DNA from: Bugula neritina | Taxonomy: Eukaryota > Animalia > Bryozoa | Direction: 5' to 3' | Length of the DNA: 64,000 nt | Assembly (NCBI GenBank): GCA_964035545.1 | Contig: OZ037770.1 | Location: 6,024,729 to 6,088,728 of the forward strand | Part shown: piece by piece, positions 7,591 to 59,477 of the stretch | Layout of the letters: each line of letters opens with the position of its first letter | Position numbering within the stretch: position 1 is the stretch's first letter | Made by a program: the position numbers and the translations under genes | Notes under the pieces: generated by a model | What the model was told of the DNA's origin: nothing | The model's input: only the letters and a program-made list of their open reading frames with translations | Database searches by the model: none

Positions 7591-10500
7591 GTGAGTGTCT
7601 ATTAGATTAGCTTTGTAAATGTTAAATGAGTTTAGTTGTGTTATTTATTTATTTTGTTTATTTACTTAATAGTGAAATGCAAAATTTATTACTGAAGCAT
7701 TTTTCGCTCATAATATATTTATACAGTATAATATACATAAACATAGTAGTATATCTGCAACATTGTACCTGTACCAAATAGGCTGGTTGAAGAGGCTAGA
7801 GAGTGTAAAACTGCCTGTACTGCTACTCAGTAGCATTAATTAAATCATGTTTTATGTAACGGAACACTGAAGTAATGTACAGTTTATAGTAGTATAGAAA
7901 AGGCTAGTTATGTCATCAACTAAGAATATACTATATTAAACATTAGTCATTATATTAACTTACATAGCATTGTAGAGTAAGGTCTTATGTACTATAAACT
8001 AACAGCTAACCTTGCAAAATGAAGCTTCCCCCTTCCTCACCTACAACATAATATAACAGAAACTCTTTGCCGTACTTTGCAACAATAAGTGTGTTTCTTG
8101 CATGTTTTATTAAGTTTAATACACCTGTAAGTATTATACAGTATTTCATATATTATTATTATAAACTACATATATCACATATTTTATATTACAGTTTACG
8201 TCAGCTGACTCAGTTGGAGAAACTATGCATAGGAGGGAACCCTCTCAACACAGTACCAGAAGTTGTGTCATCACTCACATCACTTAAAGAGTTGGTTATG
8301 TGGAACTGTGAATTATTTACTCTACCTGAGAGGTTTGTGTCTCACAGTCTTTTATTGTTTCAAACATTTAATAATTCACATCTTTGAAACTAAATTGTTT
8401 ACATAACTCATCAGGTTGATTATTCTGTATTCAGTGCAAATTTTAATTTTATATGGTTTTGGTAGTGTTACGAGAATTGAATGTATTATTGTCATTGAAA
8501 TATAAGCAGAATAGACCCTTTGCAGAGGTTCTCAATGTTCCCCTTGCAATCAAGAGTTGTGTCTTCCCAAAATAAAAGTTGTTGAACAAAATAAACTTGA
8601 ACTCACTTTTGTGGTTGCTGAGCAACACTGAAGTGCCACTTCAGCATTGCTCGGTAAGCAAAATTAGAAAAGTGCTTTTAAGTTTATTTTCATTAAAACC
8701 TCCATGGAGAAATATCTTTAGAAAGTTTTTGGACTGCTAATATGTGTGCTTTTACCAAAATATCTATCTTTGAAAAAGAACAATTTTATCGCATAATTAG
8801 AATTGTAAGTAGTAGCCAAACTTTAAATTTTTAATGAGTTTGCTCTCTATACAAAGGGTCAACCTGTTCACTTTGGGAGGACTCAACTCTTAGTTGTAAA
8901 AGGGATATCGGGACCTCCGAAAAAGGGTCTATTGTAATTTGCATTTCATAGTTTTGTGAGTGTGCTAGTGTCATAGTATATTTTATTGTTTTAAAAATTA
9001 GGTCATTCATACATTTATTTGCTTATCAAGTATTATTAAACTGTACCATGATATATATTGCTGTGGTTAAAAACATTAGGTGAGCTTTTCAAAGTTACTG
9101 TATGTAATAGTTTCTTATATCCTAGAAATGATAATATAGTTGTAAGTTATGCTATTATGTATCACTGTGTAGTAAAAGGTGTTGTATTTATTAATGAAAC
9201 CATCTCTTGTGGTTTACCTAACCTTTAATGAGTCTTTATTCACCTTGTGTCTTTGATTTGACTGTGTCTTGTGACAATAAGTGTATTTCTTCAATTCCTC
9301 ACTTGGTTGCATACACCAGTGGTATATACAATATATACATTGTTCTGACACAGTAGACTACATATATCACATACTATACATTACAGTCTGTGCCAGCTGA
9401 CTCAGTTAGAGAAACTAGACATAGGGAATAATCCTCTCAAGACAGTACCAGAAGTTGTGTCATCACTCACATCACTTAAAGAGTTGAATATGGGGAGATG
9501 TAGATTATCTACTCTACCTGAAAGGTTTGTGTCACAGTCTTTTATTGTTTCAAACTTTTAATAATTCGCATCTTTGGAAGTAACTCGGTTACATAACTCA
9601 TCAGGCTGATAGTTCTGTATTCAGTGCAAATTTGTATTTCAAGAGATTTTGGTAGTGTTATGAAAAAACTGAACCTGTTGTAGTTGAAATGTAACCAGAT
9701 TGTAAATTACATTGCTATGTTTTGTAAGTGTATTAGTGTCATGGTATATTTTTAATGTTTAAAAATTTAGTCATTCATATATTTATATGCTTATCAAGTA
9801 TTTCCAAAGTATATTATATTATATGTTGCTGTGGTTAAAAGTGTTAAGTGAACTTTTCAAAGTTATGTAATAGATTTTTAGATCGTGGAAATTTTAATGT
9901 TTTGAATGTTTACAGTATGCAATAGAGTTGTTTATTATTACTGCGTGAATCAGATGATGTTTGGCAACTGTATGAGGTCATGTTCTGTATATATATATAA
10001 GATAAAAATTTACTAATAAAGAGATAGTTTTAGACCCTCAACCGAGTGTAAGTCTCTACAGCTTAGATATAATAACTGCAACTAACACGACATAAATTTG
10101 GTGACGAGGATAATACAATAGTGGCAACTCAAAAATTTAAAATGGCTACTGGCTCCATACCGCAGTTTAGTAGGAAGATAGAACATTATATGCAGAAGTT
10201 AGAGAGTTATTTTCTCATACACAAGACAGATGCTGATTTGAAGAAGCGTGTGCTGATTATGAGAGTCAATACAAAACTTTGACCAACTTGGTATCACCAG
10301 AGATGCCACAGGATGTCGGCTATGACAATCTAGTACAACAGCTAAAGAGATACCATGGTGCAGTGACAAATAGAATGGGTGAGAGGACAAAGTTTAGAGA
10401 AGCCAAGAGATGACCAAATGAATTTGTGACCGACTTCATAGCTAGACTGAGGGCACAAGGTAGATCATGTGAGTTTGGGAATGTGCTACATGATAATTTG

Positions 10501-59477: not shown

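Follow-up and report, generated by a model that had tools for sequence, protein, structure and literature searches.

The window analysed here, a stretch of 64,000 nt from the genome of the bryozoan Bugula neritina (coordinates are window positions unless prefixed C6, C1 or L), carries 24 exons that each encode two leucine-rich repeats (LRRs). The explanation that we consider probable is that these exons belong to a ROCO-caspase recognition gene of approximately 100 kb, whose LRR sensor arm was shaped by concerted exon exchange together with diversifying selection; the 24 exons would make up the first two thirds of that arm. Seven codons per exon evolve with a ratio of non-synonymous to synonymous rates (omega) above 1, whereas the other codons remain below 1 (about 0.5). 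The near-invariant silent sites of the exon framework reflect concerted evolution, that is, exon duplication, crossover within exons, and exchange within and between genes. In plant NLRs, lamprey VLRs, and brown-algal ROCOs, the recognition arm is characterized by a hypervariable LRR surface on which diversifying selection acts. The same logic would apply here to an animal family of at least 74 genes in which an LRR arm acts through an LRRK2-type GTPase switch on a caspase, and sensor, switch, and death protease would sit in one chain. The array itself is a clean, quantifiable case of framework homogenisation plus site-specific diversification.

Organization and variability of the LRR exons

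A first-pass annotation of the window had proposed 24 LRR exons between 8195 and 59477, and exactly this number, with the same ends and all on the plus strand, was recovered both by a fuzzy core search and by an independent six-frame hidden Markov model (HMM) scan. Each exon measures 138 nt, is preceded by AG and followed by GT, contains no stop codon, and shares the reading phase of 1 nt, 45 codons, and 2 nt. Every exon corresponds to two 23-residue repeats, the first spanning codons 7–29 with Asn at repeat position 9, and the second beginning at codon 30, crossing the exon junction, and ending at codon 6 of the following exon, with Cys at position 9. The repeats follow the 23-residue LxxLxLxxN/CxLxxLP type, with Leu at positions 1, 4, 6, and 11 and Asn or Cys at 9. 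Pfam LRR_4 was found on LRR exon 1 with 30.4 bits, and the LRR exon aligned in register to the structures of SHOC2 (E = 4e-18), LRRD1, and Leptospira LIC11098 (E = 8.5e-29). Across the family, 85 of 95 LRR exons carry the donor GTTTGT, a weak, non-consensus sequence; that of the start exon is GTGAGT. Exons that do not alter the frame and whose donors are uniformly weak would be well suited to regulated skipping.

The positional tally comprised 95 intact exons taken from six genes of the family, that of the window and five others (L018 being the last LRR exon of the L016 array), and variation was concentrated in seven codons, namely 11, 13, 14, 34, 36, 37, and 39. These are LRR positions 5, 7, and 8 in both repeats and position 10 in the second repeat. 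The effective residue number in the first repeat was 6.2 at position 5, 3.2 at position 7, and 7.7 at position 8, with position 10 below 2.5; in the second repeat the values at positions 5, 7, 8, and 10 were 4.7, 6.5, 7.2, and 3.7. All remaining repeat positions reached 2.4 or lower, with mild variation at positions 12, 13, and 16, and the convex side was almost invariant. Thus, variable sites are not scattered over core and convex positions, where the effective number stays below 2.5 versus 3.2–7.7 at the variable ones. At the concave positions 2 and 3, the first repeat always had E-K and the second always K-E. Among the window exons, the residues observed were D/H/C/N/Q/P/K/Y at codon 11, G/R at 13, E/G/W/N/K/Y at 14, N/C/V/D at 34, S/K/W/G/L at 36, D/S/N/R/H/E/K at 37, and K/R/E/Q at 39, in agreement with the lists of the first-pass annotation. 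Its remark that codons often change by several nucleotides was likewise reproduced, as 53% of differing hypervariable-codon pairs differed at 2 or more nucleotides.

The sites were placed on the LRR faces through the LRR motif rule. In this standard rule, the concave-face strand is the segment aaLXLaa (positions 2–8), and the residues after it make up the loop that follows at the C-terminal end (PMC2747839). The hypervariable sites accordingly comprise one position in the loop and three of the five positions exposed on the strand. The earlier proposal that variability is confined to the concave face therefore held for positions 5, 7, and 8 and needed amendment elsewhere, since positions 2 and 3 do not vary, position 10 belongs to the loop, and positions 12, 13, and 16 vary mildly. 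AlphaFold2 was also run on a single 45-residue exon with a 77-exon alignment and returned an all-helical artefact (predicted local distance difference test, pLDDT, of 59), unusable for mapping.

At the nucleotide level, diversity among the window exons was 0.445 at positions 1–2 of the hypervariable codons, 0.129 at framework third positions, 0.091 at four-fold sites, and 0.255 in the flanking introns. A central block of 45 nt was found at 3 or fewer mismatches in 21 exons and exactly in 7, with 0 expected, and its mean per-site diversity was 0.054. The block is thus near constant, as had been claimed for the framework even at silent sites, but silent diversity amounts to about a third to half of that of the introns and is not zero. 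Inside the hypervariable codons, all four nucleotides occur at the first base, yet the silent third base does not change: codon 11 was NAC in 79 of 79 NAY codons and codon 34 was NAT in 81 of 81. This rules out a mutational hot spot acting on whole codons.

Evidence for selection and for exon exchange

Selection was assessed with Nei–Gojobori counts (pN and pS, the proportions of non-synonymous and synonymous differences) on independent pairs, and with omega per site class under the GY94 model on a fixed tree in IQ-TREE. For 90 unique exons, omega was 3.9 at the seven codons versus 0.54 at the others (test against omega = 1: 2dlnL, twice the log-likelihood difference, of 32.1; p = 1.5e-8). The 57 unique exons of the five other genes, on which the sites had not been chosen, gave 5.1 versus 0.74, and the 34 unique exons of the window gene gave 2.6 versus 0.41 (p = 0.015). 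Pairs of exons matched by their introns point the same way. In 17–42 independent pairs of this kind, hypervariable pN was 0.14–0.27, exon pS 0.04–0.09, and intron divergence 0.012–0.07, so hypervariable pN was 5–12 times the intron divergence (Fisher p from 1e-27 to 1e-54 against introns), while pN/pS was about 0.5 at the non-hypervariable codons. The top seven codons by non-synonymous changes in these pairs were exactly the seven hypervariable ones.

A second genome was available through the metagenome contig L032 from the Joint Genome Institute (JGI), the counterpart of window positions 47475–54075 at about 89% identity. For the six closest cross-genome exon pairs, intron divergence (0.084) and exon pS (0.110) did not differ (p = 0.22) and framework pN was 0.050, whereas hypervariable pN reached 0.276 (p = 4e-8 against introns and 6e-4 against silent sites). 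Since silent sites evolve at the intron rate in this comparison, no constraint at the nucleotide level is needed. The proposal of dN/dS above 1 at the named positions is therefore borne out by the omega values and by both sets of pN, and with the fixed third bases these make four independent approaches that point to selection. Within the window, a block of about 2 kb occurs four times, and among its copies the share of variable columns was 5.9% in introns, 6.8% at other exon sites, and 16.7% in hypervariable codons.

Diversifying selection, the reason first given for the pattern, accounts for the x positions but leaves the invariance of silent sites unexplained, and for the latter concerted evolution is required. 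The four-copy block, which includes two LRR exons per copy, is a recent tandem growth of the array, and a second duplicated block (35279–36923) matches 46460–48088 at 94%; because of these duplications, the 24 exons cannot be counted as independent, and part of the silent-site likeness is due to them. The exon at 16359 is clearly chimeric, derived from two lineages: compared with LRR exon 6, its 3' half and downstream intron are near identical, while its 5' half is 12% apart and its upstream intron 28%. More generally, the genealogies of upstream intron, 5' half, 3' half, and downstream intron were almost uncorrelated (Spearman 0.05–0.25), and exon pairs with almost identical introns showed more differences in exons than in introns. 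A 29-nt core occurred 335 times in the genome and not once in the reversed control. Between genes, Roc-COR pS was 0.18–0.47 and LRR framework pS 0.09–0.18, the latter no higher than within a gene. Recent duplication alone was consequently rejected as the cause of silent-site invariance, given that the framework is equally alike between genes with that Roc-COR pS.

Exon order also differs between the two genomes. Contig L032 has an extra LRR exon (L032:842) between the counterparts of the exons at 47909 and 48541, and its closest relative in this genome is L002:2376, beyond the window and about 19 kb further downstream. Further along, the GC-rich intron stretch at 51763–54075, after exon 23, matches L032:4052–6360 at 88% identity. 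It is probably a degraded transposable element; if it is an insertion, it is older than the split of the two genomes.

Gene model, effector module, and family

The array continues for 12 LRR exons past the end of the window, giving 36 in total, all open-framed and with GT donors in 35 of the 36 and GC in one. Upstream, the start exon has counterparts before the first LRR exon in ten other family copies, with 69–80% amino-acid identity. One start exon and one Roc-COR exon only were present in the 114 kb examined (C6:6.0247 to 6.1387 Mb). The Roc-COR exon (C6:6127650–6129398) is open over 688 codons and is a large exon that holds about 3 LRRs, Roc, and a COR-like region in one open frame. Pfam Roc (PF08477) was found on the window gene's own exon (L008:8646–9998) with 32.3 bits, above the cut-off of 27, and on three paralogs with 31.5–33.1 bits. 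COR-A matched at the expected place (residues 328–394) below the threshold, with 19–24 bits versus a cut-off of 35.3, and database relatives of the exon carry precomputed PF16095 hits; the portion of the window gene's Roc-COR exon within L009 gave no Pfam hit. Just downstream on the same strand, Peptidase_C14 (PF00656) scored 36.0 and 36.8 bits (cut-off 21.4) at L009:1604–1831 and L009:2255–2497.

Considering order, strand, phase, and splice sites, we infer a single gene of about 100 kb composed of the start exon, 36 two-LRR exons, the LRR-Roc-COR exon, and the caspase exons, and all 36 LRR exons would be joined in one transcript. This layout recurs in the genome. A coordinate comparison placed a caspase exon 1.2–8 kb downstream, on the same strand, of about 60 of the 74 Roc-COR exons, and the order LRR, Roc-COR, caspase was found again on metagenome contigs. 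At least 74 genes of this kind make up the family. Its compact members at other places in the genome have 14–17 LRR exons at a spacing of about 570 nt followed by the large LRR-Roc-COR exon. The window gene is about five times longer than these, has twice the usual exon number, and bears the largest array seen among the family copies examined, with about 72 cassette-encoded repeats. The nearest named relative of its Roc-COR exon is an 'MFHAS1 homolog' from the bryozoan Watersipora subatra, with 37% identity. A query of the protein database with the 45-residue exon returned only genomic open reading frames (ORFs) from metagenome contigs.

In the caspase module of the window gene, the catalytic His is kept (THG), but the place of the catalytic Cys reads EASSGG (C6:6130983–6131225), and the His/Cys dyad was not found in this exon. 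Four other family copies have Cys at the same place (QACSEG, EACSEG, EVCSGG, and ETCSGS), while EASNGG is found in the paralog L021 on the minus strand. The caspase module may thus be non-catalytic, or of a Ser type, in a subgroup of the family.

A distant subfamily on the JGI metagenome contigs L028, L029, and L031 has LRR exons that read NISxNxLSEGLPDxxF, with the two-LRR exon plan, the variable positions, and the order of Roc-COR and caspase all the same. A second large cluster at C1:32.78–33.07 Mb has the same LRR exons, except that their core invariably reads GAT instead of GAA (PDVV instead of PEVV). Caspase matches near this cluster were all weak and none of the 74 scored Roc-COR exons falls in that interval, and the cluster may be of different architecture. 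Upstream of the start exon, an 18-nt 'LPYTNx' minisatellite is shared by at least three family genes (L005:6981–7406, L010:9073–9906, and L015:8727–9623). The copy of the window gene, L005:6981–7406, lies about 2.6 kb before the window and is split from the start exon by a Gypsy element. A long ORF of 'LPYTNx' units had been considered as the N-terminal exon and was rejected, as it is this minisatellite.

The features of the window are listed in Table 1. Its GC-rich inter-exon stretches correspond to Gypsy and LINE (long interspersed nuclear element) insertions in introns, and the Gypsy element at the start of the window is outside the gene product. The intron between LRR exons 2 and 3 includes two long ORFs, at 10864–11676 (plus strand, 270 codons), which had no Pfam match, and at 14429–15379 (minus strand, 316 codons).

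Table 1. Features located in the window, with coordinates, strand, and basis of the assignment (RT, reverse transcriptase).
Feature	Position	Strand	Basis
Gypsy-type retrotransposon (protease, RT, RNase H, integrase parts), between upstream minisatellite and start exon	988..6312	-	
Start exon: ATG, 75 codons + 2 nt, donor GTGAGT; N-terminal cap + one LRR-like turn	7364..7590	+	
LRR exon 1	8195..8332	+	core search, HMM scan, Pfam LRR_4
LRR exon 2	9387..9524	+	core search, HMM scan
LRR exon 3	15532..15669	+	core search, HMM scan
Four copies of ~1.8-2.4 kb block with two LRR exons, starts 16327, 25810, 27801, 30233	16327..32028	+	95-98% identity
LRR exon 4, chimeric relative to exon 6	16359..16496	+	
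LRR exon 5	16702..16839	+	core search, HMM scan
Gypsy-type retrotransposon, frame in several pieces, intron between LRR exons 5 and 6	18479..24733	+	
LRR exon 6, protein same as exon 8	25842..25979	+	
LRR exon 7	26185..26322	+	core search, HMM scan
LRR exon 8	27833..27970	+	core search, HMM scan
LRR exon 9	28176..28313	+	core search, HMM scan
LRR exon 10, identical to exon 13	29823..29960	+	
LRR exon 11	30265..30402	+	core search, HMM scan
LRR exon 12	30608..30745	+	core search, HMM scan
LRR exon 13	32240..32377	+	core search, HMM scan
LRR exon 14	32682..32819	+	core search, HMM scan
LRR exon 15	33124..33261	+	core search, HMM scan
LRR exon 16	35400..35537	+	core search, HMM scan
LRR exon 17	36295..36432	+	core search, HMM scan
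LRR exon 18	36744..36881	+	core search, HMM scan
LINE-type element (endonuclease + RT), intron between LRR exons 18 and 19	40492..43211	+	
LRR exon 19	46579..46716	+	core search, HMM scan
LRR exon 20; counterpart at start of contig L032, residues differ only at codons 36, 37, 39	47468..47605	+	
LRR exon 21; counterpart L032:439	47909..48046	+	
LRR exon 22; counterpart L032:1597	48541..48678	+	
LRR exon 23; counterpart L032:2370, flanking intron divergence 0.041	49318..49455	+	
LRR exon 24, last in window	59340..59477	+	

Explanations considered and parallels in other systems

The probable explanation, a recognition gene under exon exchange and diversifying selection, has to be weighed against several others. 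Without positive selection, the x positions would be unconstrained and silent sites would be held back by splicing enhancers or RNA structure; this would agree with a silent-site diversity among exons of 0.09–0.13, about a third to half of the 0.26 of flanking introns, and with a whole-family hypervariable diversity only 1.7 times that of introns. We hold it to be very unlikely, as silent sites and introns diverge alike from the second genome while hypervariable pN is higher, and neutral sites cannot beat the neutral rate as the hypervariable ones do, by 5–12 times, in recent intron-matched pairs; moreover, neutral x positions would be homogenised by the same exon exchange as the silent sites. 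Targeted mutation, driven by a deaminase or a retroelement as in VLR, antibody, or diversity-generating retroelement systems, seems extremely unlikely even though changes are clustered in codons 11–18 and 34–42 and 43–53% of them involve several nucleotides within a codon. The variable nucleotides are codon positions 1–2 next to a fixed silent third base, and mutation is blind to codon positions. No single template base is favoured, the consensus at variable sites being G, A, or T, the nearby RTs belong only to ordinary Gypsy and LINE intron insertions, and all variation seen is germline.

A different possibility is that exon exchange alone produced the pattern, with short gene-conversion patches drawn from a shared pool of old variants and no ongoing selection for novelty. 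Exon silent sites are 3.4 times as diverged as introns in intron-matched pairs, the genealogies of exon halves and introns are uncoupled, and in recent pairs hypervariable pN is about 3.6 times exon pS, the same ratio as for the standing diversity of the pool, all of which would fit. Yet within the seven codons, the diversity that the pool retains is 4–5 times greater at non-synonymous positions than at silent ones, where homogenisation alone would erase both, so we judge it unlikely; exchange is a mutational route compatible with the probable explanation and no alternative to selection. Finally, the array could represent an expansion that has lost its function and is decaying, a pseudogene region swollen by transposons, whose variation would have no meaning in this copy. 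The length of the gene, its doubled exon number, the two Gypsy elements and one LINE, and the caspase without catalytic Cys speak for this. It is nevertheless distinctly unlikely when set against 36 of 36 open LRR exons with their donors, a framework omega of 0.41 in the window gene, and intact start and Roc-COR exons; in addition, the stretch 51763–54075 is common to the second genome with intact exons around it in both, which indicates a layout long tolerated.

Some observations weigh against selection on a functional recognition arm and should be kept in view. Recombination breaks the single-tree assumption behind the maximum-likelihood omega values. The hypervariable sites were picked by their variability, a circularity lessened by the out-of-sample test and by the contrast of synonymous and non-synonymous changes. 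Whole-family hypervariable diversity (0.45) is only 1.7-fold above that of introns (0.26), because both diversities are near saturation. The cross-genome test comprises six exon pairs whose orthology was taken from intron similarity. The stripe geometry rests on the LRR motif rule, large transposons are inserted in the introns of the window gene, and the Ser in place of the catalytic Cys may mean that the effector of this copy is an inactive, non-catalytic caspase homolog.

The proposed recognition gene would work as follows. Each exon would add two turns to an LRR solenoid. In these turns, the variable residues (positions 5, 7, and 8, joined by 10 in the second repeat) would occupy the C-terminal half of the concave beta-strand together with the loop after it. 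Stacked turns would then create a continuous variable stripe beside an invariant charged stripe formed by positions 2–3. LRR exons would be duplicated, recombined within the invariant middle block, and exchanged within and between family genes, which would keep the framework alike, silent sites included, while diversifying selection would keep and promote amino-acid differences at the stripe positions. The product would be a cytosolic recognition receptor in which a ligand bound on the variable stripe could signal through the Roc-COR GTPase switch to the caspase module, serving immunity or colony self/non-self recognition. The terms 'ligand-binding' and 'recognition specificity', applied to the variable positions by the first-pass annotation, are to be read in this conditional sense.

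A further idea, which we consider improbable, is that the array is a working diversity generator in which cassette subsets are chosen by splicing, or somatic recombination occurs through the shared block, in cells or zooids. It is raised because the exons are neutral to frame and fold, 85 of 95 have the weak GTTTGT donor, and the invariant middle block is common to them. If true, many receptor surfaces would come from one gene, as an animal ROCO counterpart of Dscam or VLR diversification. Bugula neritina is noted for the bacterial symbiont that it carries. Bryozoans live in colonies and figure in a list of animals with allo-incompatibility (PMC8195603), and our literature searches found no molecular study of the phenomenon in this group; the ROCO-caspase family would be an obvious candidate for allo-incompatibility or for pathogen/symbiont sensing.

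In the literature searched, we found neither a ROCO-caspase family described for bryozoans nor any MFHAS1-like genes described for Bugula. Among published systems, the closest is that of the LRR-ROCO genes of the brown algae Ectocarpus and Saccharina, for which cassette exons, shuffling, and diversifying selection are described and a role as immune receptors is proposed (Zambounis et al. 2012, via Teng et al. 2024, PMC11378527). Both families are expanded, have an N-terminal LRR array followed by Roc-COR, are built from short cassette exons of the same phase, and combine LRR exon shuffling with diversifying selection. In contrast, the algal genes, in the account of Teng et al. (PMC11378527), carry one LRR per 72-nt exon, have the LRR-Roc-COR architecture only, and undergo documented alternative splicing, whereas the bryozoan exons are 138 nt long with two LRRs, the intron phase is different, and a caspase follows COR. 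The same account calls the algal families the largest reported; the bryozoan family, with at least 74 genes, is larger. With an animal as host, the resemblance is either convergent or of great age.

The order LRR-Roc-COR is also that of metazoan ROCO proteins of the MFHAS1/MASL1 type. MFHAS1, however, exists in one copy, its LRR domain is short, it lacks a caspase, and it is not known to have hypervariable cassette exons. Plant NLRs and receptor-like LRR proteins resemble the bryozoan family in concentrating hypervariability and dN/dS above 1 at the x positions of the strand motif and in forming clustered, recombining families. In our array, only positions 5, 7, and 8 (plus 10) vary and positions 2–3 are fixed, the switch is a Roc GTPase instead of NB-ARC, and the layout of one exon per repeat pair and the homogenisation between exons are far stronger than in plants. 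The VLRs of lampreys and hagfish likewise show variable residues of the concave strand in an invariant framework, and short identical stretches such as those found here would allow template switching. VLR cassettes lack splice sites and are somatically assembled into an incomplete germline gene, whereas every bryozoan cassette is a normal exon, bounded by AG and GT, of a complete gene; the variation shown is germline only and somatic assembly was not found. Nor does the array match a diversity-generating retroelement, as changes are not adenine-specific and the only RTs are those of Gypsy and LINE elements.

Regarding exon structure, there is a likeness to the vertebrate NLRP and ribonuclease inhibitor (RI) type, in which one exon codes for two LRRs in a common phase and gain or loss keeps frame and fold (PMC2747839). 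Two consecutive LRRs per exon and a single phase are thus common to both, but the repeats there are of the RI type, with 28 and 29 residues, and are not homogenised at silent sites. The largest number among human NLRs and TLRs is 43 LRRs (PMC2747839), compared to at least 72 in the bryozoan array.

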